Below, one piece after another: positions 11,664 through 52,527 of a stretch of DNA of 64,000 nt. The number at the start of each line of letters is the position of its first letter. Position 1 is the first letter of the stretch. The DNA comes from Selaginella moellendorffii. Taxonomy: Eukaryota > Plantae > Lycopodiophyta. The notes beneath the pieces are model-generated. The model had not been told where the DNA came from, did not search any database, and was given only the letters and a program-made list of their open reading frames with translations. A program made the translations under genes and the position numbers. Location of the stretch: NCBI RefSeq assembly GCF_000143415.4, contig NW_003314429.1, positions 124,001 through 188,000 on the forward strand, in the 5' to 3' direction.

Positions 11664-11699
<36 letters not shown>

Positions 11700-11740
11700 T
11701 GTATGTGTATATGTATATATGTATATATGTATATATATGT
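10956..11740. repeat. Compound (TA)n/(TATG)n microsatellite
   Basis: About 785 bp of TA/TATG/TATATG repeats, with a remnant continuing at 16766-16788 beyond the LTR element. Confidence 0.98.
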
Positions 11741-16356: not shown

Positions 16357-17144
16357 GAAGATGAATAAAAAAAGAAAGAGCAAAAGAAGAGAAATGACAA
16401 AAAGCTGGAAAGAAATGGTAGATCTAGACAATGCAAAAAGCTAGATCTAAACCAAAATCCTGAAAGGAAAGAACAAAAAAAAGGAAATGGAAAAAGCTAG
16501 ATCTAGACAATGCAAAAGTTAGATCTAAACTGAAATCCCAAATCTAGGCACTCCCCAGGGACAATCAAAGCTGCCCTTCATCTCCACCAATGTGAGTGCA
16601 TGGAATATAGAAAGGGAATACAGAAATGTGCATATCAATTAGCCCAAAAACCTTAGCTTATATATAGGAGCGAGTGGTCCGGATTGAAACCAATCCGGCG
16701 GCTACCAAAATCCCACTACGCTAATATTAGTATACGGCATCATAGCCATACACTTTGCCCTCACAATGTGTGTATATGTATATATATAAACATTTAGATA
16801 TTTATAATCATAAAAATTCTGAACACCAATTTTTTAAAACTTTTATTACTTTTCTTTTGGTAAAATTCTCTAGATCATGTAATATGCTTGTATTATATCT
16901 CAAATGATAACATACAAGTAGGTGGTTTTCTCTCTATGGTATTCCAAAACCAATACAACGTCATCAGATTTTTTAAAAGAAAGAAATGTGATCAAAGTAT
17001 AAATGTTGATGACTTCATTCAAAACGTTTTAAGTTGGGTAATATGCGTGTTTATAGGACTAGGGTTCCAGAGCCTTGGGCGATGCCGCGATGGAGAAAGG
17101 TATGGGATTAGCGGGCCTAGCTCCTGCACATTCCCTCCCATGTC

Positions 17145-19529
17145 ATGGCTGTGGTGCCGGCGGCTCGCAATTCGCCGTTTTTCTCGAGAGAAAGGAGAGG
17201 CTATGGCGCTTCCAGCACCAGCGACGAAGGAATGCAAGGAAGGACTTTCACAAAAACAAGCAGCAGTGGCTCAGAGGATAAAAGAATTCTCAGCTGGAAC
17301 AAGATCAAACAAGAGGAGGACAAGAGGAAAAAGGAGATGGTGCTGGAGCTCATTGCTGCATTGAAGGCGGCGAGCGGCTCAAAAGCGATCGAGAGGGGAA
17401 GGCAGCTCCATGCCGCAGCGGTTGAGAGTGGCAACGGTTCCAACTTCTACGTTGCGAGCTCTCTCGTGAGCATGTACGCGAGATGTGGCTGCATGGGCGA
17501 GGCTCGCTCGGTGTTTGATGCCATGGAGCACCACGATGTGGTTCTCTGGACAGTGCTCATGCTCGGCTACTCCAAGAACGGCCATGGAGAAGTGACTTTG
17601 GAGCTCTTCTCGCGGATGCTGCTCGTCGCAAGGCCGAATTCTCAGACGTTTCTGGCTGTGCTCAAGGGCCTTTCGAGCTTGGCTGCAAGGGAGGAAGGCA
17701 GGAGATTCGGTGGAAAGGTGGTGAAGACAAGGACTCTGGAAAGAGTCATGGCTGTCCACTTGCAAGCCGAGGGATTTGGATGCGAGCTGGATAACTTTGT
17801 GGCGAGCTCGCTGGTGGACATTTATGCCAGGTGTGGGAGCATGAGGGATGCTCGCAGAGTTTTCGATCGAATGCCGAGCCACAACTTGGTGGTCTGGACG
17901 GCATTGATCCTGGGCTATGCTACGAACGGGGAGAATGAGGTTGGCCTCAGGCTCTTCGCTCGGATGCTTGGCGAAGAAGAAGGACGCAGGACAGATTCGC
18001 AGGCTTTTGTTGCTGCGCTCAAAGCTTGCACGGGGCTGACGGACAGAGAGGTGGCAAACGACTCAGGTGTAAAGATCCAGTGCTTGGAGAAAGGCATGGC
18101 TGTGCATCGTGAAGCTGCCAAGAGTGGAGTTGCAACGGAGATATTCGTGGGAAGTGTCCTGGTGGATACATACGCGAAGTGCGGAAGCATGGAGGACTCC
18201 CGCATCGTGTTTGAGAAGATGGTGGCTCAGGACGTGGTCTCGTGGACCGCTCTCCTGTTTGGCTACGCACAGAATGGCGAGAGCGAGCTGACCCTTGGGA
18301 TGTTTGAGAGAATGAAAGCCTCGGGGTGTGCACCGAATGCTCAGACGTTCGTGGCAGTTCTTCACGCGTGCACGAACTTGGCTCTGCGAGAGGACGGCAT
18401 TGAAGAGGACGGCAAAGTCCTCAAGGTGAAAGCTCTGGAGAAAGGCATGGCTGTTCATCGGGAAGCTTTCAAGGCCGGGTTTGAGCCGGACATCTGTGTG
18501 AGCAGCACGCTGGTGGATATGTACTCCAAGTGCGGCAGCGTCCTTCAGGCTCGCCGGGTGTTTGACAGGATGAAGCGCCACGATGTGGTGTCATGGACAG
18601 CGCTCATACTCGGCTGTGCTCAAAACGACGAGGGAGATATGGCACTGGAGCTCTTCACAAAGATGAGGCTTGAAGAGAAACGTTGCCAGCCCGACGATCA
18701 GACGTTCGTTGCCGTGCTGAAGGCCTGCTCCACAGTTGCATCGCTCGAGTTTGGAAAGAAGATCCATGCAGATATATGCCGGTGTGGACTCGAGGCTGGC
18801 AGGCTTGTCACGAACTCGGTGGTGGATTTCTACGGCAAGTGCGGGAGCATGGTCGTGGCTCACCAGGTTTTCGATTCCGCTAGAACAAGAGCCCGGGATA
18901 TAGTCTCGTGGAACTCGCTCATCACAGGCTACAGCCGCCACGGTGAAACCGACGCCGTCCTCGAGCTCTTTGCAAGGATGGTGGAAGAAGGCTTCCAACC
19001 GGATGGCATCACCACACTGGCGGTCTTGAACGCGTGCTGCCATGCCGGGCTGGTTGAAAGAGGGAGGAAGCTCTTCCAGGAGATGTGCTCCCGGAACGTG
19101 ACGATGGAGCACTACCACGTCGTGGTGGACATGCTAGGCCGGGCAAACAAACTCCAGGAGGCGGTGGAGATGGCGAACTCGATGCCTTTCGCAGCGAATG
19201 TGGTGACATGGACCATCGTGCTGAGCTCGTGTCACAAGTGGAAGAGCTTGGAATTTGGAAGGCTGGCGTTTGAGGCACTGGTGAAGCTGGATGAGAAGCA
19301 GGCTGCTACTTACGTTCTCATGGCCAACATCTATGGAAGCTTGGGCATGGTTGAGGAGAAAGCTAGAGTTCATGCGATGAGCAGGAAGATTGGCGCGTGG
19401 AAGAAGCCTGGATCAGTGGTAGTCAATCTCGATTCGTTTGTCAGTTGTGGTGATCATCCTCAAAAGGAAGAGGAAAAGAACTATTATCAAACTTGTGACA
19501 GACATACTTGTAAAATAGAACTTCTATAA
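17145..19529 (+). CDS. PLS-class PPR protein with E/E+ domain (copy 1, intact)
   Basis: 794-aa intronless ORF with repeated P-L-S triplets, MPFAANVVTW...YVLMANIY and a KKPGS...HPQ tail. No DYW domain. Confidence 0.93.
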   Translation: MAVVPAARNSPFFSRERRGYGASSTSDEGMQGRTFTKTSSSGSEDKRILSWNKIKQEEDKRKKEMVLELIAALKAASGSKAIERGRQLHAAAVESGNGSNFYVASSLVSMYARCGCMGEARSVFDAMEHHDVVLWTVLMLGYSKNGHGEVTLELFSRMLLVARPNSQTFLAVLKGLSSLAAREEGRRFGGKVVKTRTLERVMAVHLQAEGFGCELDNFVASSLVDIYARCGSMRDARRVFDRMPSHNLVVWTALILGYATNGENEVGLRLFARMLGEEEGRRTDSQAFVAALKACTGLTDREVANDSGVKIQCLEKGMAVHREAAKSGVATEIFVGSVLVDTYAKCGSMEDSRIVFEKMVAQDVVSWTALLFGYAQNGESELTLGMFERMKASGCAPNAQTFVAVLHACTNLALREDGIEEDGKVLKVKALEKGMAVHREAFKAGFEPDICVSSTLVDMYSKCGSVLQARRVFDRMKRHDVVSWTALILGCAQNDEGDMALELFTKMRLEEKRCQPDDQTFVAVLKACSTVASLEFGKKIHADICRCGLEAGRLVTNSVVDFYGKCGSMVVAHQVFDSARTRARDIVSWNSLITGYSRHGETDAVLELFARMVEEGFQPDGITTLAVLNACCHAGLVERGRKLFQEMCSRNVTMEHYHVVVDMLGRANKLQEAVEMANSMPFAANVVTWTIVLSSCHKWKSLEFGRLAFEALVKLDEKQAATYVLMANIYGSLGMVEEKARVHAMSRKIGAWKKPGSVVVNLDSFVSCGDHPQKEEEKNYYQTCDRHTCKIELL

Positions 19530-19782
19530 ACTCACTCCATTTTGTATCAAACTTTCTTTTGGTAGGAAAGAGGTTAGAGTGAAGCTTTGGAAGTGAAAGA
19601 GAACAAACCTGGCGGATGGCATGACCCAATGACGTGCATCATGAATCAGCTAAACCTGTAAAGGTGACAATGTTAAACAAGTCATTTGATCATACAAACC
19701 ACGCAGGAGCCCCTATATAAAAGCCCCTGGTGATCAGGACTATGAATCAATCAGTGCTCCATATTTACAAAAGAGAGTGTCA

Positions 19783-20033
19783 ATGGCTTCCTCCACTCAG
19801 TTTGTTCTTGCATTCTTTCTAGTGGCAATAAGCCTTATCAACGTTGAATCCCAGGATTCAGAAAAATGTAGCGGGGGTACTACCGTCTGTTGCTCCAATA
19901 TCGATTCTTCTAAAGATCTTGTTGATATCGATCTAGTTGCTCTTTTGGGATTCAAAAACTTCGCCTGCATACTCAATCAGGTTAAGTGTGAAACACTGAA
20001 ATCTGCTGCAAGGAGAAATGCAAAGCTATTTAG
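19783..20033 (+). pseudogene. Hydrophobin-like gene B, copy 1, with a 1-nt frameshift
   Basis: TATATAAAA at 19714, a signal peptide, then C-X6-CC-X24-C-X6-C. Restoring one A at about 19991 gives C-ENTEI-CC-KEK-C-KAI*. The 3' UTR resembles that of the intact copy at 48907. Confidence 0.72.
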
Positions 20034-20289
20034 GCCAATCAAGCACCAAGAAACAAAAGCATAAATAAATTCCTCTTAAATCACTAAATCGACAAAGCTT
20101 TCTTTCTCAATGTTTTTGACCTAGTGCGTTGGTATTGATATCAGCTATTTTAAACTCTGTCAGGCAACACTTTTTCTTCCCAGGAGCATTTTGGATTTAA
20201 AAGCTGCATTTATCGTTCATTACATAATGAGTCTGAACTCGCAGATATCCAAACACTCTTAGCTTCTAGTCAATGATCATAATTTCCCT

Positions 20290-23232
20290 TCAGCTAGATA
20301 CTCCGCCACCGCCGCCACCGCCACCACAACCACCGCCGCCACCACCACCACCTCCTCCGCCACACCCGCCACCACCACCTCCGCCACACCCGCCACCACC
20401 ACCTCCGCCACCTCCTCCACAACCTCCGCCTCCGCCTCCGCCTCCGCCACCTCCTGCTCCACCACATCCCCCACCTCCACTGATGCCACACCCGCCTCCA
20501 CCAGCACCACCTCCGCCACAATACGAACCACCTCCATCATACCAGCACTGGCCATCACCGCCAAAACCATCACCACCACCAACATCATCGCCACCGTCAC
20601 CACCGTCGCCCCCGTGCTCTCCCCCGTGCTCTTCCCCGTGCTCTCCCCCGCCCTCTCCGCCTCCGTCCTTGCGGCGACGGCGATCAACTGTCACAGCACC
20701 TGGTCAAGCAGCAATGTTCTTAGAATTTGCGTGCAAAGAAACTTGTTTCTCACCCCAATGATCTTGTTCTTCTTCTGAGATGATCACTCGTTTCCTCGTA
20801 TTCGTCCACGAAGGAATGCCTTTGCCGAGCATATCCGACACGGACATGCTTATGGTTGCCAGCAAAAGAAGCACAAGCAGCACATCCTCATTGCGATCAA
20901 TCTGAGACAAATCAAATCACAAAATTGGAGCTAAACTTCGATTAAAGTCTACCTGCATGCCACCAGACCGCCAGTTGAAAAGAGCTGTCGCCTTGCCTTG
21001 AGGAGCGTCTCTTGTGNNNNNNNNNNNNNNNNNNNNNNNNNNNNNNNNNNNNNNNNNNNNNNNNNNNNNNNNNNNNNNNNNNNNNNNNNNNNNNNNNNNN
21101 NNNNNNNNNNNNNNNNNNNNNNNNNNNNNNNNNCACTATATCAGAGAATCTGTACCACTATATATGCAGACTAACTCACCGGACAGTCGTGGGATTTCAT
21201 TTCAACGCGGAGCTGTGGTTTCATGTTCCAGTGCTTATCCTTGACATCTCTGTTAACAGTTAAAATAGCCTTCCCGTTCATTAGAGACCATCTCCTAGAC
21301 ACTGAAGATGGTTTCTCTAGTTGCCATGCAGATCCTAGAATTCACCTGAGAAAACAAAGCAACACCATAAATCTTTTGCAAAACATGTCCAGAAGATGCT
21401 CATACCATTTACGGAGCCAGTGTTGTAAGAACCGTCGTATGTCCACCCTCCTTTGTGAACATGGATAACTTTATCGGTGTCGAGAATGCTCCTTAGCAAA
21501 AGCCCTCCACCCTTGTATCTAAAGCAAAAGTTGCCACATTAGTTCTAGAAAAAGTGGCTCAATTTGCAAACCTGCAACGGACGACGAAGGATTCGTTTCT
21601 GGTGTGGTCGAAAACATTCCTTGTTATCCACATGCCTTCTCTGTGACTGTGGAGGCTGTGAGTGGCACAGTCGTCTCCCGTGTCTCTCACTCTCACGCTT
21701 CTGAAGAGATAAGGCGCAGTGACTGGAGGAGTAACGGAGATGTAAACCAGCACCGACACTTCTCGGTCCTTCTTTGTCTCCAGCAATGGAAACCAGCCGC
21801 TGAGTGATTGCGTTTCCGAGCGGATGACAGTTTTCCATGGAATCAGGAGCAGGCCCACGGTTTTGGATATCAAAAAGCGCTTCTGTCGAACTGCGAGCAC
21901 CAGCCCTTCGGTGGAGAGCTCAGCTGTTATGGTTGAGACTACGCTCCGATGAGAGGAAGCCTTCATTCGTTGGCTCTCGAGATTCAGATACTTTTGATGG
22001 TTTAACGAGCTTATCACGTAGTAGATGGTCCTATCGTCTGGCAAACCTCTGGTACCTCTTACGGAGAGATGAACCTGCATAAATCGAATCAGATCAGACG
22101 AGATTGACAATAAATCTGCGAACTCCAATACCTGAATGGTCTTTCGCTCAGCCAAGTCATAGTCGTTTTCACTAGCGAGCCTGGCGAGCTTGGCTGGATC
22201 ATAAGCAGGTGTTCCGGGAATGGATGCTGGTGGCTCCCCTCTATACATGCACCCTGCTTTCTCGTATGGAAGGCCATACGTGTCTTCCCACATAGATCGA
22301 GTCTTTGTGAATCCATTGTCCAGTTTTCCTCCAGAATCTCGGTTGCTATCTGTGTCGTCATGCTCGAAGATCCTTCCCAGTACCTGTGTGAGATCGTTGT
22401 GGTAGCTCACAGGGTGAAGCTGATGTGTATGCCATATTAAATCGATGTCGTAAGTGGGAACGAAAAATGTTGATGTGCCAGACTTGCGTACGAGATGGAG
22501 AAACGCCTTGTAACGTGCAACAGCAGCTACCAAGAAGCTCTCGTCCAGGTAATGCGGCTCAGAAACCTGCGTACTCAAAGTTAATTTGCTTCCAAGGAAA
22601 GATCGTCACTTGCCTGATAGTAGAAACTTTTCTGCCTGAGAGCTGCTTCTGCCAAATCATAAAAGATATTGGTTGGTCTTTCGGTATATCGCCTTGTTGA
22701 GTCTCCACCGTAAATGTCAAGAGTGTATGGTTCGTCTGGAAAATTCGAAGCCCATGTACTGGCGCTTTGTTGGAGATCATTTCTGTGCCTCGCCAAAGAA
22801 GGTCCGTCCACAATTTTACCGAACAATCTCTTACAGTCGTCAGCATATTGAACCTAGTCAGACACGTAACTTTAGTAGATTGAAGTGGACAGACAATGAA
22901 TAGCCACACTTACAGGATTCAAGCGATGGCAATGCCATATCCAGCCGCAGTCGAGTGGCGGGACAAAAGTCCCAGAAGAATTTGCTAACAGCGGAAGGCA
23001 GCAGTACTGGTACCTAGAATCCAAGAAGAAATCAGCAAACTAGATCAAACAAGTAAATATCTTACCTCTCAATTGCCCTTTCCAGAACAGGCCTCTCAAA
23101 CAGCTTGAAATTGGCATGTACCAGCGAAAGGAACTCCAACTGTGATTTTGCAGCTGCTACCACATCCAGAGAGAGCGTAATTTCTTGAGCCTTGCGCCAT
23201 TCATTCACTTGATTCACGGAAAGCGAAGCCAT
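20290..23232 (-). CDS. Glycine-rich domain-containing protein (GRDP/DUF1399), copy 1; multi-exon, spans a gap, apparent 1-nt deletion near 21340
   Basis: Exons encode LDVVAAAKSQLEFL, PPLDCGWIWHCHRLNP, FYYQ|VS, ARYKAFL, VPTYDIDLIWHTHQLHP, HDDTDSNR and a C-terminal GGGCGG tail. Confidence 0.88.
21017..21133. other. Assembly gap (117 N)
   Basis: Run of N. Confidence 0.99.
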
Positions 23233-23598
23233 TGTTGTAGTCTGTGAGTCGAGCACACTGCTTGGTCTGCTTAAATAAGCGGGAAGAAGCTGCCTGCTTT
23301 GACTCTTTGAAGGATGCGTAGAGAGTTCGGAAATTCGATGTGTCTTAGAGCTTTTGGATGTTCAGGCTAGTTTACGGCGACGGCCAATGATCTCGCAATC
23401 CACGCGGGGCTCGTAGAGAGTTTCAAGGTCAGTGTGTATCATTGACTGGCGTCGCAGGATCGTCGAACTTGCTTTTTTCGTCAAGTCGTCTTTACCAAGA
23501 CTTTTTTTGTTACTGTGTCAAAGGATGTGCGTCCACGATAGCCTGAAACAAAACATAAAAAAAAAAAAAAATCAGTAGGAGAAGTTTCGACTGTACTT

Positions 23599-24430
23599 TC
23601 AAGGGAAATCCACGTCCTTTTGGGCCAAGAGAAGCTCAAAACGAGGAACGAGAAGTACTCTTCCATGTCCTTTAACACTCGCTACTTCGTGCCTGGGTTG
23701 AAAAAAAAACGGCACAAAATTAGAGAGACTGTCCTCAGCGAAGATCTTTCCTTCCCATGGAGGATGGATGGATACAACACATCCGACCTGTACATCGGGA
23801 GAAAGGCTGTCGAAAATAGCGGTGGCAGCTTCAAAGGTCTCCAAAACCTCGCACTTTGTGGATGTGAGATGTGCCTCAGGCGACGATTTCTCGAGCACTC
23901 GTAAAGTGAGAGAACCATCTAAAGCAAGGAACCATGATCATGTCGAAGAGAACAAAACAGGGAAAGACATACCAGCTGGTTTCATGTCTGAGCTCAAGTG
24001 ATTGTGGCGCCCTCCCAGTTGTGCCAAGAGCGCTTCAAACCTTTACGAATCAAAGAAACGTCAGATGTTAAGGACGGCATGGAAGAGCCACTGACTTAGA
24101 CTTTGACGAGGTTTCTGCCGGAAGATCACCGCCGTCGCTGCTAAACTCTTGAAGCTCTTGCACAGAAAGCTTGGTCAAGGATGCATCCTAGAAAAACAAT
24201 CAGTGAGAGGAGAAGAAAGAGAAGGGCCAGGCTATGTCTCGTTACCTCGGACGTGGTATCACTTTCGATCGGATCAAGGCTAGAATCCACCCTGGAAGAG
24301 AATGATCGCTAGAAATGAAGAATAGAATCACTGGAAATGCAGCTACCTCGTGCTTGCCTTGCGCCCAACATCGTCGTCGTCGTCGGCATCTGAGATTCCA
24401 TCCTCCAGCTCCAGTGGCCGTCGCGGGCTG
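23599..24430 (-). pseudogene. Unknown multi-exon gene, copy 1 (start codon lost to a 6-nt deletion relative to copy 2)
   Basis: Short exons with splice sites assemble to ...DDDDDVGRKASTRVDSS...VQVGCVVSIHPPW...HEVASVK. Copy 2 retains the ATG. Confidence 0.4.
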
Positions 24431-26504
24431 CCCCGGGTTTAAACGAGAATATGGCGTGGCTGTTGTTTAAGTAGTTCTGACATATCATGAACCGTTGGAT
24501 GAATTCTAGCACATAGACTTTTATAGGTCGGCATGTTGTCTTTGTTCAGGTACACAGAAAGCATCAGCTCGTAGATGAGATGACACAGTTTGCGACGATT
24601 TTTCCTTGGTTTGAATGGATGTCAGGACAATCTTGGTGACCACAACCATGGCAGGCCAAAAGCCATTTGACCTACATTCCCAGGAAGGGAGATGAAGTGA
24701 TTGTAATGGTTAAATATATATGAACATTCCCCAATGTCCCATAGGGATTGTTAGTGTTGTCATCAAGAAACTAATCTAATGATGCATACCTATTGCAGCC
24801 AACCACAACAAAAACATCAAGAGTGCAAACACCACTGCCCTCAACCTCCAGCCAAAGCTGACCATATGTAGGTGAGGTACTAGCCTTGGGGATATCCTTG
24901 CTGTGATGCTTTATTTCTTGATCATGGAATTCTTGTATAAGTTCCTCCCTCCAAAATCTATTTTAATCCCTGTTGAAGCATAGTCACTACCGTGACTTGT
25001 GAAAGCAAGGAGTATATAAGTATTGTATCCCTATACATGTGTGTGTCTACTGTATATTCTGTCCTAACATGGTCTTAGAGGATTAAGGGCAATTTGTAAG
25101 TGATGGGAAAGTATAGTGGATTTGAGGGATTTTTGTCTAATTGTTGAGAGGAAGCTGAAAAAGAAGAAGGTTCTTGGGTTACTCACTTGAAAGGAGCAGC
25201 CACCATCAAGGCTGAATGAAATAGATCATGGTTTAAGTAGGCTAAGTTGCCAAGTCATCCTAGACATATTCAAGCATCATCAGTCTTTGGAGGAATGGCC
25301 ATATAACTAATAAGCTTACTAGACTATACAAATTTATAATTCTATATAGACTTTGAATTTAGTGAGTGTAACACATGTTTAATCCCATTACAGATAGCCA
25401 AGGGTATCCATGACATACTAGTTTGTTATGTTAATGTTGAGAAGGGAGCCTCTCAACAGCGGGAAAAACACTCTATCATACTCTAAAATCCAATTCTCCA
25501 TTGTTTGAATATTCTAGGGTATGGGCACAGGGGTATATTCCCCATTTTTTAGGGCAGAGAGTTCACAAAGAGATATTTTTATATTTTAGAGAATCTTGCT
25601 CAACTCTAACCATCTAAAGAATGCATTAACTCTGTTGCACGTGAGAACGCAAGGCTTAAGTATTGGTGTAGACTCCAATATGATGTCCTGTGTTAACAAC
25701 TGTTGTGAGGAAAAAAGACTAAAGAAAAATGAAGAAAAAAGAAGATGAAGAAAAAAGAAAGTGTAGAGTTCTGGAGTTAAAAGGAAACCATATGGGAGAA
25801 GTTGACAAAAGAACTAGATACTAAAACAAAAAGAGATAAAATGGAGAAAAAACAAGTGAAAATAAGAGAAAACCTCTAAAAAAAACCTTAAACCTCTAAA
25901 AAAAACAGCATGGAAGAACAGAGTCATCAAGGATGCATCCTAGAAAAAGACCTCATTACCTCGCACTCGATTTTGTTACGGTTTAAGGTTTATTGGCAAT
26001 CACTAGAATTCATGGTCGATGAAGTGAGTGACAAGCGTGGCCGCTGTGCTGTTGTTTGTACCAACATTCTCCTACTCACTTACAAGCACAGGAGCCATAA
26101 ATCTTGGGATGTTGGCCAGGTTTTTAGCCTTCCAAACATTATTCTTTTATTGTATTTATGTTTTCGAAACATGAGAAAGTATAAATCAGCAGAGAAGGTT
26201 TGGATTTCGAGTCATGAGATGGTAGGCTTATCCCAGCCGAAAACTTCCGGGTAGTGGTTGCCTACATATATCCGATGCAAGTAAAAGTTTTTTTGAGTCT
26301 TCTTAGACAAACATATCTTTCTTTTTTAGTTTAGACTTTATTCTACTAAGGTTGAGTGGGGATTACAAATTTGAGTGGTTTCCAAAAACACAGGCAATGG
26401 GAAATTGCTACAACAAATAACGACGTACTATACTATTGGTTGATTTAACCGGTGAATTATCTCTTTTAGCCTTTTTCTTTCCCAACAGTATCAAAGAGGG
26501 TATT

Positions 26505-26663
26505 TGTAATGCATGTGATTATGGTACTGTCACCGTAGATCCTTGGAACCTTGGGGGATAAATAGGGATAAAATAGCCACTAAAGGCTCTCTCATTAAGC
26601 AATTACCCCTTTTTCAGTTGGTTTAAGGGGAGAGAGATAATGTGCGTTACATGGTATCAAAGC
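26505..26663 (+). mobile_element. Short LTR-like unit followed by a tRNA-iMet PBS (remnant); second copy at about 55457-55632
   Basis: TGTAATGCA...TGCGTTACA inverted termini (26505-26651) immediately followed by TGGTATCAAAGC. Confidence 0.55.
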
Positions 26664-26749
26664 AAATGGTATGGGTTCGATTCCCATTGATTAGTATTTA
26701 CATTGATTAGTGGTTACTTAAAAGTTTAATATACCCTTGAGCAAGGTAT

Positions 26750-27690
26750 TCCTACCCGAAATCATATGTATTGAGCATCCATGCATACGTCTTTCTTCTT
26801 GTGTGAAGTATCCACGGACAAAGGTATCCATCGTGTGCCGAAATCATATGTATTAAGCATCCATGTGTACATCTTTCCTTTTGTGTGAAGTATCTACGGA
26901 CGAAGGTATCCACCGCGTGACTACCACACACGGGTGTTACCTCACATGGAATAGCTAGTTTACACAATAGAAAGATTGGTGAAGTATCTATAGACGAAGG
27001 TATCCACCGTGTGACTACCACACACGGGTGTTACCTCATATGGAATAGCTAATTTATACAATAGAAAGATTGGTAGATTGGATTGAATTGGAGGTGTTAG
27101 TTTCCCTTGGCTCAATAGGGGTTATTAATCAAAAGTTACCAAGATACTGGATTGGTAGATTTAGTGCGGAAATGGAGTCAATAGTTACCCTCTTATGTGA
27201 AGTATCCATGGACGAAAGTATCCACCATGGGACTATGGTACATGTGACTACCACACACGAGTGTTGCCTATTGGATTGGATTGGAGGTGCTGGTTCCCCT
27301 TGGTTCAATAGAGGTTGTTAATCAAAAGTTACCAAGATACCGGATTGGTAGATTTAATGCAGAAATGGAGGTGTTAGCTTAGTAGAGGTTGTTAGTCAAT
27401 AGTTACCCTCTTGTGTGAATTATCCATGGATGAAGGTATCCACCGTGGGATTACAGTACATATGACTACCACACACGGGTGTTGCCTCACATGGAATAGC
27501 TTGTCTACACAATGGAAGGATTAGTAGATTGGATTGAATTAAAGGTGTTGGTTCTCCTTGGCTCAGTAAGGGTTGTTAATTAATAGTTACCAAGATACTA
27601 AATTCGTAGATTTAGTGTGGAAATGGAGGTGTTAATTCCCTTTAGCTCAGTAGAGGTTGTTAGTCAATAGTTACTAAAATACCAAAGAAC
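26750..27690. repeat. Degenerate modular tandem repeat (satellite-like)
   Basis: Recurring modules GACTACCACACACGGGTG, GAAGTATCCATGGACGAAAGTATCCAC and GATTGGTAGATTGGATTG. Confidence 0.85.
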
Positions 27691-38062: not shown

Positions 38063-38335
38063 TTAGATGGTGGTGCATGCCAGAACGTTGGTGGAGTCTG
38101 TCTGCTGGCAGCAAACAGGAGTCCCTCCGCACTCGCTACCCACATTTACCGCACAATTTGCAGCATTGACAGTCACAAGTGTACCAGGAGGTGCAGCAGG
38201 GAAATTCGAGCAGCAGTAAGAAGTGGAATCATTTCCACAAGTTTGGTTGCCCTGTCCCAAGGCAGGATTGAGAAAGAGAGCAGCACTCAGGGCCAAGAAT
38301 GTGGCAATAAGCTTAATTGAAGAAGAAGAAGCCAT
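38063..38335 (-). CDS. Hydrophobin-like gene A, copy 2
   Basis: The protein is identical to that of 10244-10516. Confidence 0.8.
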   Translation of the reverse strand: MASSSSIKLIATFLALSAALFLNPALGQGNQTCGNDSTSYCCSNFPAAPPGTLVTVNAANCAVNVGSECGGTPVCCQQTDSTNVLACTTI

Positions 38336-41044: not shown

Positions 41045-44000
41045 GTGAGTGCATGGAATATGGAAAGGGAATACAGAAATGTGCATATCAATTAGCCCAA
41101 AAACCCTAGCTTATATACAAGAGCGAGTGGTCCGGATTGAAACCAATCCGACGGCTACCAAAATCCACTACGCTAATATTAGTATACGGCATCGTAGCCG
41201 TACACTTGGCCCTCACATCATCCCCTCCTCTCGGAATAATGGAAGGCCGTCAGGGTTCTCTTGTAGATGGGCCGGGATCTGGAGGAACGTCAGGAGGAGG
41301 CATTGGTGGATCTGTAGACGGTATTAACTGCTCCTGATCCCTTTGTATGAAGCGTTTTAACCGCTGCACATGCACAATCTCCGGAGGATCGGCCTGCTGA
41401 ACGTCATGCCGAACCTCATAAACTTGTGGTCCAACTTGCCGCAACACTCGATACGGTCCTTTCCACTGCGCAAGGAGCCCCTTAGATAAACCACGTACCG
41501 TAAGATGGGGAAAACGGACTAATACCAAATCATCCACTTTGTACTCCGCAGGTGGACGATGATGGGAATTGTAGCGCCGTTGTTGTCCCACTTGTACGCG
41601 GCCTAAGTGTTCAGCAGACTCTGCTCGGACAAGTGGAAGAATGCTTGTCAAATATTGATCCCATGACCTAGCATCAGGAGCTCGTGGCAATCGCGAAGGT
41701 AAACCCAGCTCTGTTGGTAATATTGGATCATGACCATATAGAAGTTTATATGGTGAAGCACCAACAGAACTCTGCACCCCTGTGACATAGGCATACCGAA
41801 GAGACGGCAAATAACCATCCCAATCCGAATGTTGAAAGTTCACATACTTCGCAATCATCCCTTTGAATGTCCGAACGAGCCGTTCCACCAGACCGTCTGA
41901 TTGTGGATGATAAGCACTCGTAAAAGTGTGGCGTATCCCCAACCGAGATGTCAAAACATGAAATACCTCAGCCATAAATGCAGGACCATTATCCGAAAGA
42001 ATCCGCTCTGGACAAGAATGCTGGAACACCACTCGATTGAGGAGGAAGTATCCAACAGCAGTTGCAGAGGCACTAGCAAGAGCACCAACTTCCACCCAAT
42101 GAGTCAAGTAGTCAAAAGCAATAATAACATACTCATTGCCAGCAGTCGATCGCGGAAAAGGTCCCATAAGATCAAACGCCACCAACTCAAACGGACGAGA
42201 AACTGCAATTGACTCCAACCGTCCTTCCGCAGCACAAGGGGGAGTATTACGAGCTTGGCACCAAACGCAGCTATGCACATACCGGATAATATCACGTCGC
42301 ATCTCTGGCCAATAGAAAGATCTGCGCAGCTTCTCGGTGACACGACGGTGTCCCATATGCCCACCTAGAATAGGAGAATCATGGTAGGCATGGAGAAACC
42401 GCGGAATAAACACCGAAGGCACCACCAGCCGTAAATGATCAGCAGGATCCGTCCCCACAAAATAAAGAAGGCCATCTTCAAGGCAATATTGAGAATGTAA
42501 ATGCCGAAAAGGCAAGTCATCAGCAAGTGATGCAGGATTCTCAAACCCATCTTGAAGCCTTCGAATCCACGGCTCAATCTTTTGAGCCTCGCGAACCTCA
42601 TCAAGAGAAGGTAGATCTTGCTCTACGCCCTGTGGACACTGAACGTCAAGGACAGCAACCGCCGACGGCACAGAATCCTCATCTAGAAAATCCACAGATG
42701 CTGGAACAACAGGTTCGTCAAAAACATGAGAAGTGAGTGGAGAAGGAAGAGGAGCTCGAGAAAGGGCATCAGCATCAGCCATAGAACTCCCTGGGCGATG
42801 AACAACATCGAAATCATATATCTGAAGCTTCAAAGCCCATCGAGCCGTACGACCAACCAGGTTCTTCCGCTTCAATAATGAAGTAACAGCAGCATGGTCA
42901 CCTTCAAGTAACGTCCGAGAACCATGTAGATATGCATGAAGTTTCTCGAAACCCCAGACTGCTGCTAAACACTCCTTCTCCGTCGTGGAGTAGTTCATCT
43001 CCGCTGGTTGTAATGTACGGCTGATGTATGCAATGGGATGGCGTTGACCAGGCACACTCGAGCTCTCTTGCATCAACACACCTCCAAGACCAATGTCAGA
43101 AGCATCCACGCGCAAAATAAAAAGGTCGAGTGTAGTTAGGATATGCCAAAATCGGAGGAGTCGTCAATAGCTCTTTGAGATTCACGAACGCCCGCTCACA
43201 ATCGGGAGACCAGATGAAAGATGACGTTGATGACTTCAGCAACGCTCGCAATGGTGTAGTGCGATCGGAAAGATGATCCACAAAACGACCGAGATACTGC
43301 ACCTTACCCAAAAAGCGCTGCACATCATTCACACACTTTGGAGTAGGGAACTTTAGAACAGCCACAAGTTTGTCAGGATCAACTTGCAAACCCTCACGAG
43401 AAATACGGTACCCAAGATAAGTTGTGTCCTTGGACCCAAACACGCACTTCGACTGCTTCAGCTTTAAACCAACGTCGCGTAGCCGATCCAACACTTTACA
43501 AACATCACGAACATGCTCCTCCCACGTCCCCTCCGAGTGGATCAAGACATCATCAATGAAGTTAGCCGTCACCTCCGGCATATCGCAAAGAACCTCGTCT
43601 ATCATCCGCTGAAAAGTTGCTGGAGCATTGTTCAAACCAAACGGCATCACCAAAAACTCGTACAAACCAAATGGTGTACGAAAAGCAGTCTTAGGAATAT
43701 CTTCGTCAGCCATCGGTACTTGCCAATACCCAGAAGCAAGATCTAGCTTGGTGAACCAACGACTTTGCCCCAGACGATCCAAGAGATCAGCAGTGTGAGG
43801 AAGAGGGTACACGTCCGGGATCGTCACTTCATTTAACGGACGATAGTCGATGCAGAAACGAATACTCCCATCAGGCTTCGTCACAAGATGAGGTTCACAT
43901 GCCCAAGGACTCCGCGACTTCCGAATAACACCCTTCTCCAACATCTCCTTGACGTTTGCACGTAAAATCTTGATCTCCTTGGGTGACCGACGACGAACAG

Positions 44001-46053
44001 GAACCTTGATTGGACGAGCATCCCCAGTTGGAACGGGATGACGTGTGGCAATCTTGGCCCCAGACGATAGGTCAAACTCAAAGAGATCAGAATACTCCTT
44101 CATGAGCTGGTCAACAGCTGCAACACAAAGATCATCGGAGGGATCGGAAAAGGGAAGAGCAGAACAAGATGGAAACACAAGAGGAAATAGTGGGGGAACA
44201 AAAGTAATGGAAGCAGAGGTAGAAGTAGAGGGACGAAGAGGTACGGAAGTGAGAGGAATGGATGAAACATAAGGAAGTATGAGACAAGGGGGAGAAGCCT
44301 CAAAGTCACACTTGGCATGATTGTGTTGCAACCAATCCATACCAAGAATGAGGTCAAAAGCTTGACTCGGCACCACCCGCAACGACTGCAACTCAAGCTC
44401 GAGATCGCCCACACGCACAACCAGGTCTGCCTCATCTCATGCACATGCATGTGTACGGCCGTTGCCATAAAGAATGAAAACTGGATCCGCCGCACGACGC
44501 AAGTGTAGACGACAATGTGTGGCAACAGGTCGAGCAATAGAAGATAAACTCAAACCTGTATCAACCAACATGGAGAGAAGAATAGAAGACCTCTTGTTAT
44601 AAAAACGAGCTTGGAAAGTAAACACTGGATGAACCGGTGCCGAGTGAACCCCTTGATGATACTCCCGAAAGAAAGATGGAGGGGTCACTAACTTATTCGC
44701 GCAAGGTCCCTCCATTACTCGCGCGACTCCTCGTTTCCCGAATGCACCTCGGGATCCAAACCTTCCACCGCAGCAGCACCAACGGGACGTTGCTGACGCC
44801 AAGGTCTCCACCCAGGAAATGGAGGTCGCCAATCCGGAAAGCGCCGACAACGCCGATAAGTATGACCAACTTCATCACACGCCCAGCAACGAACGTCACG
44901 GCCACGACCACGTCCTCGCCCTTGTCCTTGGACTCGAGTAGCAGCAGCATCAACCTCCATGGGAACAGGACCATCACTCATAGGAAGCGGAGCTGAAGGA
45001 CGTGTAGCAAGAAGTGGAAGAGGCGACGTCTCATAACGTTGTGCCAAGTGAAGAGCATCGTCAAGAGTGGCAGGAGCAAGTGCATGCACAAGTCCGACAA
45101 GATCTTGACGAAGTGCTGGCCACAGCATTCCTAGCTTGATCCGCTCTGACATATTTGGCTCCGCACGAAGCAAAAGACTTCGGAAACGAACGCCAAATTG
45201 CATCACCGACTCAGATGGCTCTTGGCGAAGACGATGCAATTGTTGGAAGGCATCATCACAATCGTCGGCGTGTCCGAAGGCGCGTTTGAAGACGTCCGGA
45301 AGAACACTCCAATCACCACGAGTAGCTGCGCTCAATCCATTGTACCACTGCAATGCCGTCCCTTGGAGACATGTGGGGAACTCACGCAAACGTCGAGTAT
45401 CATCCCAAGAATGATATGTGGCAATCACCGTGAAGTGATCGAATCAATGGTACACATCATCCCCAGGATTCCCACGAAAGAACTCCGGCCGAACGCGAGG
45501 ATTGGCACCAAAAGCAGGAGGAGTTGTACCATGTGCCGTGAACGCCGCCATCAACTGAGTTTGGTTGTTCAATTACAAGCGCATAGCATCAAGCAATTGA
45601 ACCAACTACTGCTCTAGAGTCAAAGGAGGAGATTGCGGATCGGCCATGAAAATGAATGAAAAAGAAAGAGCAAAAGAAGAGAAATGACAAAAAGCTGGAA
45701 AGAAATGGTAGATCTAGACAATGCAAAAAGCTAGATCTAAACCAAAATCCTAAAAGGAAAAAACAAAAGAAAGGAAATGGAAAAAGCTAGATCTAGACAA
45801 TGCAAAAGCTAGATCTAAACCGAAATCCCAAATCCAAGCACTCCCAGGGACAATCAAAGGTGCCCCTCACCTCCACCAATGTGAGTGCATGGAATATGGA
45901 AAGGGAATACAAAAATGTGCATATCAATTAGCCCAAAAACCCTAGCTTATATACAGAAGCGAGTGGTCCGGATTGAAACCAATCCGACGGCTACCAAAAT
46001 CCACTACGCTAATATTAGTATATGGCATCGTAGCTATACACTTGGCCCTCACA
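41045..46053 (-). mobile_element. Full-length Ty3/gypsy LTR retrotransposon (element 2), same family as element 1
   Basis: LTRs at 41045-41217 (terminal T missing) and 45880-46053, PBS at 45868-45878, gag at about 44715-45647. pol (41250-44715) has a stop at 44437 and a frameshift near 43115. Confidence 0.96.
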
Positions 46054-46241
46054 AATGGGAATAAACTAGATTTTCCTATTCCATTTAAATTTCTAAAATT
46101 CTCTAATGTGGTTAAAGTATAAATGTTGATGACTTCATTCAAAACGTTTTAACTATGCGTGTTTATAGGACTAGGGTTACAGAGCGATGGAGAAAGGTAT
46201 GGGATTAGCGGGCCTAGCTCTTGCACATTCCCTCCCATGTC

Positions 46242-48622
46242 ATGGCTGTGGTGCCGGCGGCTCGCAATTCGCCGTTTTTCTCGAGAGAAAGCCACCGGGC
46301 GAGAGGCTATGGCGCTTCGAGCACCAGCGACGAAGGAATGCACGGAAGGACTTTCACAAAAACAAGCAGCAGTGGCTCAGAGGATCAAAAAATTCTCAGC
46401 TGGAACAAGATCAAACAAGAGGAGGACAAGAGGAAAAAGGAGATGGTGCTGGAGCTCATTGCTGCATTGAAGGCGGCGAGCGGCTCAAGAGCGATCGAGA
46501 GGGGAAGGCAGCTCCATGCCGCAGCGGTTGAGAGTGGCAACGGTTCCAACTTCTACGTTGCGAGCTCTCTCGTGAGCATGTACGCGAGATGTGGCTGCAT
46601 GGGCGAGGCTCGCTCGGTGTTTGATGCCAACCACGATGTGGTTCTCTGGACAGCGCTCATGCTCGGCTACTCCAAGAACGGCCAGGGAGAAGTGACTTTG
46701 GAGCTCTTCTCGCGGATGCTGCTCGTCGCAGGCCGAATTCTCAGACGTTTCTGGCTGTGCTCAAGGGCCTTTCGCGCTTGGCTGCCAGGGAGGAAGGCAG
46801 GAGATTCGGTGGAAAGGTGGTGAAGACAAGGACTCTGGAAAGAGTCATGGCTGTCCACTTGCAAGCCGAGGGATTTGGATACGAGCTGGATAACTTTGTG
46901 GCGAGCTCGCTGGTGGACATTTATGCCAGGTGTGGGAGCATGAGGGATGCTCGCAGAGTTTTCGATCGAATGCCGAGCCACAACTTGGTGGTCTGGACGG
47001 CATTGATCCTGGGCTATGCTACGAACGGGGAGAATGAGGTTGGCCTCAGGCTCTTCGCTCGGATGCTTGGCGAAGAAGAAGGACGCAGGACAGATTCGCA
47101 GGCTTTTGTTGCTGCGCTCAAAGCTTGCACGGGGCTGACGGACAGAGAGGTGGCAAACGACTCAGGTGTAAAGATCCAGTGCTTGGAGAAAGGCATGGCT
47201 GTGCATCGTGAAGCTGCCAAGAGTGGAGTTGCAACGGAGATGTTCGTGGGAAGTGTCCTGGTGGATACATACGCGAAGTGCGGAAGCATGGAGGACTCCC
47301 GCATCGTGTTTGAGAAGATGGTGGCTCAGGACGTGGTCTCGTGGACCGCTCTCCTGTCACAGAATGGCGAGAGCGAGCTGACCCTTCGGATGTTTGAGAG
47401 AATGAAAGCCTCGGGATGTGCACCGAATGCTCAGACGTTCGTGGCAGTTCTTCACGCGTGCACGAACTTGGCTCTGCGAGAGGACAGCATTGAAGAGGAC
47501 GGCAAAGTTCTCAAGGTGAAAGCTCTGGAGAAAGGCATGGCTGTTCATCGGGAAGCGTTCAAGGCCGGGTTTGAGCCGGACATCTGTGTGAGCAGCACGC
47601 TGGTGGATATGTACTCCAAGTGCGGCAGCGTCCTCCAGGCTCGCCGGGTGTTTGACAGGATGAAGCGCCACGATGTGGTGTCATGGACAGCGCTCATACT
47701 CGGCTGTGCTCAAAACGACGAGGGAGATATGGCACTGGAGCTCTTCACAAAGATGAGGCTTGAAGAGAAACGTTGCCAGCCCGACGATCAGACGTTCGTT
47801 GCCGTGCTGAAGGCCTGCTCCACAGTTGCATCGCTCGAGTTTGGAAAGAAGATCCATGCAGATATATGCCGGTGTGGACTCGAGGCTGGCAGGCTTGTCA
47901 CGAACTCGGTGGTGGATTTCTACGGCAAGTGCGGGAGCATGGTCGTGGCTCACCAGGTTTTCGATTCCGCTAGAACAAGAGCCCGGGATATAATCTCGTG
48001 GAACTCGCTCATCACAGGCTACAGCCGCCACGGTGAAACCGACGCCGTCCTCGAGCTCTTTGCAAGGATGGTGGAAGAAGGCTTCCAACCGGATGGCATC
48101 ACCACACTGGCGGTCTTGAACGCGTGCTGCCATGCCGGGCTGGTTGAAAGAGGGAGGAAGCTCTTCCAGGAGATGTGCTCCCGGAAGGCTGCAAGCGTGA
48201 CTATGGAGCACTACCACGTCATGGTGGACATGCTAGGCCGGGCAAACAAACTCCAGGAGGCGGTGGAGATGGCGGACTCGATGCCTTTCGCAGCGAATGT
48301 GGTGACTTGGACCATCGTGCTGAGCTCGTGTCACAAGTGGAAGAGCTTGGAATTTGGAAGGCTGGCGTTTGAGGCACTGGTGAAGCTGGATGAGAAGCAG
48401 GCTGCTACTTACGTTCTCATGGCCAACATCTATGGAAGCTTGGGCATGGTTGAGGAGAAAGCTAGAGTTCATGCGATGAGCAGGAAGATTGGCGCGTGGA
48501 AGAAGCCCGGATCAAAGCTATCCAGTGGTCAAATCAGTCTCGATTCGTTTGTCAATTGTGGTGATCATCCTCAAAAGGAAGATTCCCAAGAAAAACTTAT
48601 GACTGACAGACTTGTAAATTAA
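46242..48622 (+). pseudogene. PLS-class PPR gene, copy 2, frameshifted
   Basis: Near-identical to 17145-19529, but a 1-nt deletion at about 46730 (GTCGCAGGCC vs GTCGCAAGGCC) splits it into two ORFs. Confidence 0.85.
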
Positions 48623-48906
48623 AAAGTCCTTGGCAACTGGCCATTTTGTGACACTCACACTCAAGCATCACCTTCAAACCTCTCATGCTTGCAGTGAAGC
48701 TTTGGAAGTAAACGATTGAAATGAGCTGGAACACTTCAACAAATGGAACACTGTCAGTCAAGTTGAGCTCGCGGATGGCATGACCAAATGGCGTGCATTC
48801 ATGAATCAGCTAAAGCTGCAAAGGTGACAATGTTGAAGAAGTCATCTGATCATACAAGCCAGCCCTTATTTAAAGACCCTCTTAACTCCAGGAAAGGAAC
48901 AGTGAA

Positions 48907-49170
48907 ATGGCTTCCTCTACTCAGCTTGTTCTTGCGTTCTTTGTCCTGGCAGCATGCCTTACGCACACTGCATCCGCAGAAACAGAAGTATGTAACAAGG
49001 GTACCACACTCTGTTGCAACGACATTGACGCTTCTGAAGGAATTCCTGTAGAGATTGACGCAGACATTCTCAAGTGCTTTAATGTTGTCGCTGTGAATCA
49101 GTGCTCCAACACTGTAGTCTGTTGCGAGGAGCAGAAAGCCGGGATCTTTGTTGGGTGTGTTGCTATATAG
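48907..49170 (+). CDS. Small secreted 8-Cys protein, class I hydrophobin-like (gene B, copy 2, intact)
   Basis: 87 aa. The signal peptide ends ...TASA, followed by C-X6-CC-X19-C-X8-C-X5-CC-X10-C-X3. TATTTAAA lies about 40 bp upstream. Confidence 0.85.
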   Translation: MASSTQLVLAFFVLAACLTHTASAETEVCNKGTTLCCNDIDASEGIPVEIDADILKCFNVVAVNQCSNTVVCCEEQKAGIFVGCVAI

Positions 49171-49263
49171 GCAAAAGCGGCAAGAAACAAAAGCATAAAA
49201 TCAATTTCTTTAAATAAATAAAGCTGTTTGTAATCAGGCAGAAAAAACACGATTTATAAACAT

Positions 49264-52158
49264 CTAAATACCCCCGCCGCCGCCGCCGCCGCCGGCCCCC
49301 CCGCCACCGCCACCACAACCACCGCCTCCACCACCTCCTCCTCCGCCACACCCACCACCTCCTCCTCCGCCACACCCACCACCACCGCCTCCGCCACCTC
49401 CTCCACAACCTCCTCCTCCCCCTCCGCCACCTCCTCCACAACCTCCTCCTCCCCCTCCGCCACCTCCTGCTCCACCACATCCCCCACCTCCGCTGATGCC
49501 ACACCCGCCTCCGCCACCACCACCTCCACCACCTCCGTCATACCAGCACTGGCCATCACCGCAAAAACAATCATCACCGCAAAAACAATCATCACCGCCA
49601 CCGTCCCCGTCCTCTCCGCCTCCGCCTCCGTCCTTGCGGCGATCAACTGTCACAGCACCTGGTCAAGCAGCAATGTTCTTAGAATTTGCGTGCAAAGAAA
49701 CTTGTTTCTCACCCCAATGATCTTCTTCTTCTTCTGAGACGATCACTCGTTTACTCGTCTTCGTCCACGAAGGAATGGCTTTGCCGAGCATATCCGACAC
49801 GGACATGCTTATGGTTGCCGATAAAAGAAGCACAAGCAGCACATCCTCATTGCGATCAATCTGAGACAAATCAAATCACAAAACTGGAAGTAAGTTTCGA
49901 TTAAAGTCTACCTGCATGCCACCAGATCGCCAGTTGAAAAGAGCTGTCGCCTTGCCTTGAGGAGCGTCTCTTGTGAATCTTACCATTGTCACAAACCACG
50001 CTTCCTGTCGCTCGGATGCACCAGGAACAGCAAATTCCAGGTGACGCCCCGAGAAGAGCATGATCTACAATCAAGTTTTCCAGAGAATCAGCCACTATAT
50101 CAGAGAATCTGTACCACTATATATGCAGACTAACTCACCGGACAGTCGTGGGATTTCATTTCAACGCGGAGCTGTGGTTTCATGTTCCAGTGCTTATCCT
50201 TGACATCTCTGCTAACAGTTAAAGTAGCCTTCCCGTTCATTAGAGACCATCTCCTAGACACTGAAGATGGTTTCTCTAGTTGCCACGCAGATCCTAGAAT
50301 TTCACCTGAGAAAACAAAGCAACACTATAAATCTTTTGCAAAACATGTCCAGAAGATGCTCATACCATTTACGGAGCCAGTGTTGTAAGAACCGTCGTAT
50401 GTCCACCCTCCTTTGTGAACATGGATAACTTTATCGGTGTCGAGAATGCTCCTTAGCAAAAGCCCCCCACCCTTGTATCTAAAGCAAAAGTTGCCACATT
50501 AGTTCTAGAAAAAGTGGCTCAATTTGCAAACCTGCAACGGTGTGGTCGAAAACATTCCTTGTTATCCACATGCCTTCTCTGTGACTGTGGAGGCTGTGAG
50601 TGGCACAGTCGTCTCCCGTGTCTCTCACTCTCACGCTTCTGAAGAGATAAGGCGCAGTGACTGGAGGAGTAACGGAGATGTAAACCAGCACCGACACTTC
50701 TCGGTCCTTCTTTGTCTCCAGCAATGGAAACCAGCCGCTGAGTGATTGCGTTTCCGAGCGGATGACAGTTTTCCATGGAATCAGGAGCAGGCCCACGGTT
50801 TTGGATATCAAAAAGCGCTTCTGTCGAACTGCGAGCACCAGCCCTTCGGTGGAGAGTTCAGCTGTTATGGTTGAGACTACGCTCAGATGAGAGGAAGCCT
50901 TCCCTCGTTGGCTCTCGAGATTCAGATACTTTTGATGGTTTAACGAGCTTATCACGTAGTAGATGGTCCTATCGTCTGGCAAACCTCTGGTACCTCTTAC
51001 GGAGAGATGAACCTGCATAAATCGAATAGAATCGGATCAGACGAGATTGACAATAAGACTGCGAACTCCAATACCTGAATGGTCTTTCGCTCAGCCAAGT
51101 CATAATCGTTTTTACTAGCGAGCCTGGCGAGCTTGGCTGGATCATAAGCACGTGTTCCGGGAATGGATGCTGGTGGCTCCCCTCTATACATGCACCCTGC
51201 TTTCTCGTATGGAAGGCCATACGTGTCTTCCCACATAGATCGAGTCTTTGTGAATCCATTGTCCAGTTTTCCTCCGGAATCTCGGTTGCTATCTGTGTCG
51301 TCATGCTCGAAGATCCTTCCCAGTACCTGTGTGAGATCGTTGTGGTAGCTCACAGGGTGAAGCTGATGTGTATGCCATATTAAATCGATGTCGTAAGTGG
51401 GAACGAAAAATGTTGATGTGCCAGACGTGCGTACGAGATGGAGAAACGCCTTGTAACGTGCAACAGCAGCTACCAAGAAGCTCTCGTCCAGGTAATGCGG
51501 CTCAGAAACCTGCGTACTCAAAGTTAATTTGCTTCCAAGGAAAGATCATCACTTGCCTGATAGTAGAAACTTTTCTGCCTGAGAGCTGCTTCTGCCAAGT
51601 CATAAAAGATATTGGTTGGTCTTTCGGTATATCGCGTAAATGTCAAGAGTGTATGGTTCGTCTGGAAAATTCGAAGCCCATGTACTGGCGCTTTGTTGGA
51701 GATCATTTGTGTGCCTCGCCAAAGAAGGTCCGTCCACAATTTTACCGAACAATCTCTTACAGTCGTCAGCATATTGAACCTAGTCAGACACGTAACTTTA
51801 GTAGATTGAAGTGGACAGATAATGAATAGCCACACTCACAGGATTCAAGCGATGGCAATGCCATATCCAGCCGCAGTCGAGTGGCGGGACAAAAGTCCCA
51901 GAAGAATTTGCTAGCAGCGGAAGGCAGCAGTACTGGTACCTAGAATCCAAGAAGAAATCAGCAAACTAGATCAAACAAGTAAATATCTCACCTCTCAATT
52001 GCCCTTTCCAGAACAGGCCTCTCAAACAGCTTGAAATTGGCATGTACCAGCGAAAGGAACTCCAACTGTGATTTTGCAGCTGCTACCACATCCAGAGAGA
52101 GCGTAATTTCTTGAGCCTTGAGCCAATCATTCACTTGATTCACGGAAAGCGAAGCCAT
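49264..52158 (-). pseudogene. GRDP/DUF1399 gene, copy 2, with frameshifting deletions
   Basis: Exonic deletions of 17 nt (about 51635) and 22 nt (about 50540) relative to copy 1. Confidence 0.85.
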
Positions 52159-52527
52159 TGTTGTAGTCTGTGAGTCGAGCACATTGCTTGGTCTGCTTAA
52201 ATAAGCGGGAAGAAGCTGCCTGCTTTGACTCTTCGAAGGATGCGTAGAGAGTTCGGAAATTCGATGTGTCTTAGAGCTTTTGGATGTTCAGGCTAGTTGA
52301 CGGCGACGGCCAATGATCTCGCAATCCGGCTCGTAGAGAGTTTCAAGGTCAGTGTGTATCATTGACTGGCGTGGCAGGATCGTCGAACTTGCTTTTTTCG
52401 TCAAGTCGTCTTTACCAAGACTTTTTTTGTTACTGTGTCAAAGGACGTGCGTTCACGTTAGCCTGAAACAAAACATAAAAAAAAAAATAAAAAAAAAAAA
52501 CCAGCAGGAGAAGTTTCGACTGTACTT

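Follow-up and report, generated by a model that had tools for sequence, protein, structure and literature searches.

Does the genome of a land plant carry a hydrophobin gene of its own? Hydrophobins underlie aerial growth, the water-repellency of spores and attachment to hosts. In at least one account they are described as proteins of filamentous fungi (PMC3032640), and the searchable literature, whose coverage is incomplete, yielded no report of hydrophobins in land plants. The question is raised by a 64,000-nt stretch of Selaginella moellendorffii DNA (contig NW_003314429.1, positions 124,001 to 188,000; hereafter the window), in which the original prediction had placed a class I hydrophobin-like gene. 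This gene, here gene B, and its signals are arranged as follows:

48867-48874, plus strand: TATA-like box of gene B, TATTTAAA, 33-40 nt 5' of the ATG.
48907-49170, plus strand: gene B coding sequence, intronless, 87 aa and stop (ORF list, regular expression, tblastn, and Pfam PF01185 with E 3.6e-4).
48907-48978, plus strand: signal peptide of gene B, predicted by inspection.
48979-49167, plus strand: predicted mature peptide of gene B, 63 aa with eight cysteines, the cleavage point being placed by inspection.
49213-49222, plus strand: two overlapping AATAAA poly(A) signals of gene B, 43-52 nt 3' of the stop.

The ORF list, a cysteine regular expression and tblastn agree on the 87-aa intronless frame that had been proposed, with its signal peptide and the mature spacing C-X6-CC-X19-C-X8-C-X5-CC-X10-C (no further cysteine in the mature region by regular expression and tblastn), and the upstream TATA-like box was found as announced. 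By inspection, the first 24 residues contain a hydrophobic core and end in T-A-S-A before E25, which corresponds to an AXA-type cleavage site. For a hydrophobin, the mature peptide has an unusual excess of acidic residues (10 D/E vs. 3 K), with a strongly acidic C3-C4 loop and a net charge of about -7, and the protein is hydrophobic overall (GRAVY 0.45).

When all six frames of the window were scanned with a broad class I/II cysteine expression, the only matches were gene B and, in two copies, a further gene, here gene A, which indicates that the pattern does not turn up by chance:

10244-10516, minus strand: gene A, copy 1, 90 aa, 31% identical to B.
38063-38335, minus strand: gene A, copy 2, 90 aa, coding sequence identical to copy 1.

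All eight cysteines of the A protein (C-X7-CC-X18-C-X7-C-X5-CC-X10-C) align with those of B, the signal peptides of the two are related, and the mature A peptide is likewise 63 aa long (AXA-type sites, by inspection), a length within the roughly 60-130 aa of mature class I hydrophobins. Rich in S, T, G, A and V and nearly devoid of charge, A resembles typical hydrophobins in composition; given the acidic C3-C4 loop of B, the two proteins may differ in behavior.

How far, then, does the likeness to hydrophobins go? Judged against the class I ranges used here (about X5-8, X17-39, X8-23, X5-6, and X6-18), all five loops of B (6, 19, 8, 5, and 10) lie within bounds, which bears out the class I spacing claimed for it, and the loops of A (7, 18, 7, 5, and 10) include one, C4-C5, that is a single residue below the usual range. 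The comparison of B with the Pfam profile Hydrophobin (PF01185), suggested along with the original prediction, turned out favorable in part: this was the sole family matched at E-values up to 10, and it was matched over its whole length (E 3.6e-4, profile positions 1-79 of 79), but the score of 21.6 bits falls 1.4 bits short of the curated gathering cut-off (23 bits). Protein A gave only two Pfam matches, both weak, to Eas (PF22354; 12 bits, cut-off 27) and to PF01185 (10.8 bits). Since A has approximately the same cysteine scaffold yet scores ~11 bits lower on PF01185, the score of B does not stem from the cysteines alone. In the ESM Atlas (a protein language model), the ten best named matches were hydrophobin clusters for B and A alike (B, 0.85 and 178 shared features; A, 0.83), as compared with 0.53-0.60 for plant LTP clusters in the search with B, and no plant family surfaced for either protein in Pfam or among the best Atlas matches.

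We also considered whether B could be a plant nsLTP/8CM protein and rejected this identity, as the original prediction had done: the cysteine order is different, no such family is matched in Pfam at E-values up to 10, and Atlas scores reach at most 0.60, vs. 0.85 for hydrophobins.

Cysteines dominate the scores of small disulfide-rich families, which evolve fast, and a Selaginella-specific family of cysteine-rich secreted proteins might have arrived independently at the hydrophobin scaffold and at an S/T/G/A/V-rich beta composition. Searched as a profile against 177,635 distinct PDB sequences, A and B together retrieved EAS first (E 0.0048) and MPG1 third. We then held the cysteines of the 57-residue EAS fragment (one fungal sequence) fixed and shuffled its other residues 2000 times. 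With the A+B profile the real fragment scored 21.3 bits, 19 bits over the shuffled mean (2.5 ± 3.3; 1 of 2000 shuffles reached the real score); with A alone it scored 18.4 bits, 17 bits over the mean (1.4 ± 2.2; none of 2000), and with B alone 10.5 bits (2.6 ± 2.6; 23 of 2000). As far as sequence can tell, the likeness of A and B to EAS thus extends past the cysteine scaffold, and the alignment of A with EAS has in common Y-CC, PA..PG.L, and C.V.V.GS.CG....CC, motifs that are found in the loops too and not just beside the cysteines. Convergence remains the main rival account and can point to profile scores that are all modest, to the lack of intermediate homologues in any search, to a fold known from low-confidence models alone, and to the acidic C3-C4 loop of B, which is unlike that of typical hydrophobins; the shuffles, the shared loop motifs, the five class I loop lengths of B, and the absence of any plant family from the Pfam and Atlas searches nevertheless make it unlikely.

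Hydrophobins have a small beta-barrel core held by disulfides C1-C6, C2-C5, C3-C4, and C7-C8, and those of class I assemble by themselves, where hydrophobic and hydrophilic phases meet, into amyloid-like rodlet films that SDS does not dissolve. AlphaFold models of B and A, built from two-sequence alignments, are of low confidence (pLDDT 57.9 and 55.5, respectively) and mostly beta, with almost no helix and with strands at the CC pairs, after C4 and after C8. Compared by Foldseek, these models retrieved MPG1 and EAS as the top two PDB entries, and hydrophobins accounted for all 30 of the top 30 Swiss-Prot models for B and for the top 19 for A, in every case with E-values of 0.04 or worse and TM-scores below 0.5; these rankings may largely mirror sequence. 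VIA-align of the same low-confidence models returned no match with a Z of 2 or more. Taken as low-confidence predictions, the models make a helical fold of the LTP type less likely, and they stop short of demonstrating a hydrophobin barrel.

Beyond the locus, no homologue was recovered by phmmer with B over 1.8 billion representatives (not even a self-match), by word-seeded searches that took B or the A+B alignment as query, or by two scans of metagenomes. Likewise, a look-up of protein B gave no exact match, and collections that comprise billions of protein sequences lack it. In databases of that size, an 87-aa query lets through only relatives of more than roughly 50% identity, so these empty searches say little about distant kin.

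To place gene B in its setting, the following features of the window are needed:

6988-26798, unstranded: tandem duplication, duplicate 1, ~96% identical to duplicate 2 except around B/B'.
17145-19529, plus strand: PPR gene, copy 1, with an intact frame of 794 aa whose product shares 97% identity with a protein of Selaginella moellendorffii.
19783-20033, plus strand: B', counterpart of gene B in duplicate 1, frame broken.
34220-55771, unstranded: tandem duplication, duplicate 2, with gene A, a Ty3-type LTR retrotransposon, PPR, gene B, and GRDP.
46105-48622, plus strand: PPR (PLS/E-motif) gene, copy 2, as two overlapping ORFs (46221-46823 and 46757-48622).
49264-52182, minus strand: GRDP gene, copy 2, with a glycine-rich last exon (49264-49653) and GRDP-like domain exons.

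The plant neighbors claimed for gene B are in place on both sides. The PPR ORF ends (48622) 284 nt before the ATG of gene B, and 93 nt separate gene B from the glycine-rich last exon of the GRDP gene, which ends at 49264 on the minus strand, so that the two genes stand tail to tail. Copy 2 of the PPR gene, divided into two overlapping ORFs, appears to be frameshifted, and the dozens of next-best matches to copy 1 are Selaginella moellendorffii paralogues. The GRDP introns are 51-62 nt long, have GT..AG ends on the minus strand, and are spliced out in contigs from RNA libraries. Within the GRDP last exon, positions 49277-49634 form a long imperfect CCN/GGN repeat, which, translated from the minus strand, reads as poly-Gly with scattered Cys.

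Gene B is also physically linked to these neighbors outside the assembly under study. In another study, an RNA library yielded a 2154-nt contig that extends without interruption from the PPR gene through gene B, and the second assembly compared (GCA_000143415.2, scaffold GL377596.1, an independent public assembly of 2011; locus L001) contains a locus with the PPR gene that is ~96% identical to both halves of the window, with matching gene order, A and B' included. The embedding in a plant chromosome, as originally proposed, is thus borne out by an RNA-library contig and by a separate assembly. The annotation of GL377596.1 calls cupin, PPR, and GRDP genes and has no gene model at A or B'. Its PPR model (L001 10001-19188) is 9 kb long, with the entire GRDP gene inside it on the opposite strand; this model probably joins, wrongly, parts of two PPR copies at the scaffold end. 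The L001 locus contains 771 N.

The unit of the tandem duplication is ~20 kb long, and both units share the order A (minus strand), Ty3-type LTR retrotransposon, PPR-E, B or B', and GRDP. The two coding sequences of gene A are identical (273/273 nt), whereas their flanks differ by ~4%. A third allele of gene A, in GL377596.1, is intact as well, with an in-frame 3-nt insertion, two replacements, and every cysteine kept. The Ty3/gypsy-type retrotransposons (11742-16766 and 41045-46054; ~97% identical) encode protease, RT, RNase H, and integrase, with a possible -1 frameshift site at 44676-44739 in copy 2. Upstream of gene A copy 1, by ~440 nt, lies a degenerate (TA)n/TATA microsatellite (10954-11738, 785 nt), which gives stop-free ORFs in six frames and is missing at the matching place of copy 2.

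B' has had a different history from its surroundings. Over the first 50 codons it is 53% identical to B (dS ~0.51, dN ~0.32). In the window, an A run that follows the fifth cysteine has lost 1 nt, which abolishes the frame, and the last loop is 21 nt shorter; read in pieces, the eight-cysteine pattern is still present, with a very short last loop. In GL377596.1 (L001 12654-12900), the A run is intact and a 10-nt loss leads instead to a TAG stop. The lesions differ between the two assemblies, which suggests that they are independent and hence young; B' is either a polymorphic young pseudogene or, as regards the window, the loss in the A run is a homopolymer error. The divergence is confined to an island (19472-20290 vs. 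48583-49260) inside otherwise near-identical duplicates, and the promoters of B and B' (~120 nt around the TATA-like box) are well conserved despite a dS of ~0.5 in the coding sequence. B and B' are far more diverged than what surrounds them, which suggests either old paralogues in a frame whose flanks gene conversion later homogenized, or the substitution of an older paralogue for one of the copies. Recent duplication of B and B' was considered and ruled out (dS ~0.5 vs. ~4% flank divergence). The duplicates decay reciprocally: unit 1 has an intact PPR gene and a broken B', and unit 2 a split PPR gene and an intact B.

Overall, the family is local to the duplicated block and consists of A (two copies), B, and the decaying B', all so far unannotated. 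Together with the PF01185 match, the retrieval of EAS by the A+B profile, and the cysteine-fixed shuffles, these paralogues uphold the original claim of a hydrophobin-like family in a plant.

Is this family still at work, or does it persist as a remnant? RNA runs from at least seven studies contain words of the gene B region, and those from several contain words of the gene A coding sequence. A second RNA run, whose organism is labeled differently, contains 48800-49180 with zero differences. The 2154-nt RNA contig ends at 49233, 11-16 nt past AATAAA, as would a plus-strand mRNA. Plus-strand transcription of B is thus likely, with the qualification that the RNA contigs are undirected and that the strongly expressed GRDP gene stands tail to tail with B. 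The RNA over B might instead be read-through or an antisense GRDP 3' UTR, and B a hydrophobin-derived relic without function, decaying or untranslated. Such a relic would fit the strandless contigs, an RNA depth over B equal to that over the neighboring PPR gene, the different lesions that break B' in the two assemblies, the lack of public gene models for A and B', and the absence of protein B from every collection. It would sit poorly with the retention of ORF, signal peptide, and eight cysteines in B and in three alleles or copies of A despite 31% identity between A and B, with 0 differences in 273 nt of gene A coding sequence vs. ~4% in the flanks, with a sole indel in gene A that is in frame, with the end of the RNA contig just past AATAAA, and with the gene A words in RNA runs of several studies. 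On balance, we consider a functionless relic improbable.

Several observations bear on the provenance of the DNA itself. A DNA run contains 48777-49158, i.e., 130 nt of promoter together with coding sequence, with one synonymous difference, and the GC and GC3 of A and B are close to those of the adjacent GRDP exon. DNA runs X18/X19 (organism C) yielded the B coding sequence (48919-49173) as a 255-nt contig with zero differences; the DNA runs of organism C also contain words from the gene A coding sequence (38063-38335), with the flanking 4 kb absent, a pattern that may reflect contigs breaking in polymorphic flanks around a conserved coding sequence. Words from the gene A coding sequence are also present in RNA runs of organisms D and E.

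A hydrophobin-like sequence in a plant assembly is a classic sign of fungal contamination, and the organism C runs carry A and B words without flanks, but the idea that a contaminant or endophyte gene was wrongly joined to plant DNA, or that the assembly is chimeric, is so improbable that we reject it: gene B is part of a 20-kb duplicated block and has PPR, GRDP, and a plant LTR retrotransposon to either side, three diverged paralogues share this block, the GC and GC3 of A and B are like those of the GRDP exon, an RNA contig of another study spans PPR and gene B, a DNA contig spans the promoter and coding sequence of B, and the B promoter is common to B', which both the window and the 2011 assembly show to be contiguous with PPR and GRDP.

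This leaves transfer from a fungus as the simplest account of the sequence likeness, and the shuffle test makes convergence less likely in comparison. We regard it as probable that gene B is a real Selaginella moellendorffii nuclear gene, homologous to class I hydrophobins through an old fungal transfer and encoding a secreted amphiphile. The lycophyte lineage would have received a hydrophobin gene from a fungus (Dikarya) once, long ago, and this event would have been followed by acquisition of a plant promoter and poly(A) signals, and by duplication and divergence (A/B 31% identical) in a birth-and-death course. The depth of this history is suggested by the genome itself (B/B' dS ~0.5; A and B only 31% identical), and constraint by the identity of the gene A coding sequences within flanks ~4% different. 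From these observations we infer homology over convergence as well as the direction and age of the transfer, and, from the likeness to known hydrophobins, the fold, the disulfide pairing, and surface activity. Fungal hydrophobin genes usually have introns. Counting against transfer, gene B has none, and the profile scores are low (B 1.4 bits below the PF01185 cut-off, A only 10.8-12 bits).

By analogy with hydrophobins, the B protein would act as a secreted amphiphile at an interface. Its signal peptide would direct it into the secretory pathway, and its small beta-rich core, fastened by four disulfides, would leave a hydrophobic patch exposed. Once in the apoplast or at the cell surface, the protein could coat the boundary between air and water or between wall and cuticle, examples being spores, stomatal or other aerial surfaces, and the surface of a contacting fungus. 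The fullest version of this account, in which true hydrophobins of fungal origin form a functional and expressed family, long kept, that coats plant surfaces or hinders hyphae, is one that we put forward only tentatively, its chances being close to balanced and tilted slightly against it.

If the account is true, the fungi-only rule would break, A and B being the first hydrophobins from a non-fungal organism, and a structural surface protein would be added to the few genes that have passed from fungi to plants. It would then have to be asked what use a plant makes of a protein amphiphile, given that plants normally depend on wax and cutin. For materials work, the family would offer unusually compact natural hydrophobins (63-aa mature peptides), an acidic variant included. 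Such genes escape annotation, as seen from GL377596.1, in which no copy was called, and from the protein collections of billions of sequences that lack B.

Compared with known systems, A and B share with the plant nsLTP/8CM proteins (PF00234, PF14368, PF14547) a small size, secretion, and eight cysteines. Those proteins have the motif C-C-CC-CXC-C-C and a helical fold; B differs in giving no Pfam signal for them, in its Atlas scores of 0.53-0.60, and in its low-confidence models, which are beta-rich. Class II hydrophobins (PF06766; HFBI/HFBII, cerato-ulmin) have the same cysteine order, and some appear among the lower-ranked matches, more so for A. Their spacing is about C-X9-10-CC-X11-C-X16-C-X6-9-CC-X10-C, into which the A and B loops C1-C2 (6-7), C3-C4 (18-19), and C4-C5 (7-8) do not fit, and PF06766 gave no match.

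As for gene acquisition, the microbial-type terpene synthase-like genes of Selaginella are a precedent for uptake from microbes. The fungal FB-lectin gene of bryophytes is a case of acquisition by a non-seed plant from fungi (PMC12513842). These precedents concern enzymes and lectins with clear phylogenies, whereas A and B would be structural amphiphiles, placed here by profile and shuffle comparisons; the likeness is that, here too, genes of microbial or fungal type would have been fixed and expanded in non-seed land plants.

The nearest systems are fungal. With the class I proteins of PF01185 (SC3, MPG1, and those of Pleurotus and Flammulina), B shares an alignment to the whole profile and class I loop lengths; basidiomycete hydrophobin clusters are its top language-model matches, and class I proteins nearly fill its top 30 in Foldseek. 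It differs in a score under the 23-bit cut-off, a mature peptide of only 63 aa, an acidic C3-C4 loop, and a plant host: hydrophobins are assigned to filamentous fungi, and A and B reside in Selaginella nuclear DNA. EAS of Neurospora crassa (PDB 2FMC; PF22354) differs from both in its C3-C4 loop (25 residues in the EAS fragment vs. 18-19 in A and B), and A and B, known here from sequence, lie in a lycophyte nuclear genome and score below curated cut-offs. EAS nonetheless shares with them the C-CC-C-C-CC-C order, a secretion signal, and small size; it is the top PDB match of the A+B profile, and the Eas family is the best lead for A in both Pfam and the Atlas.
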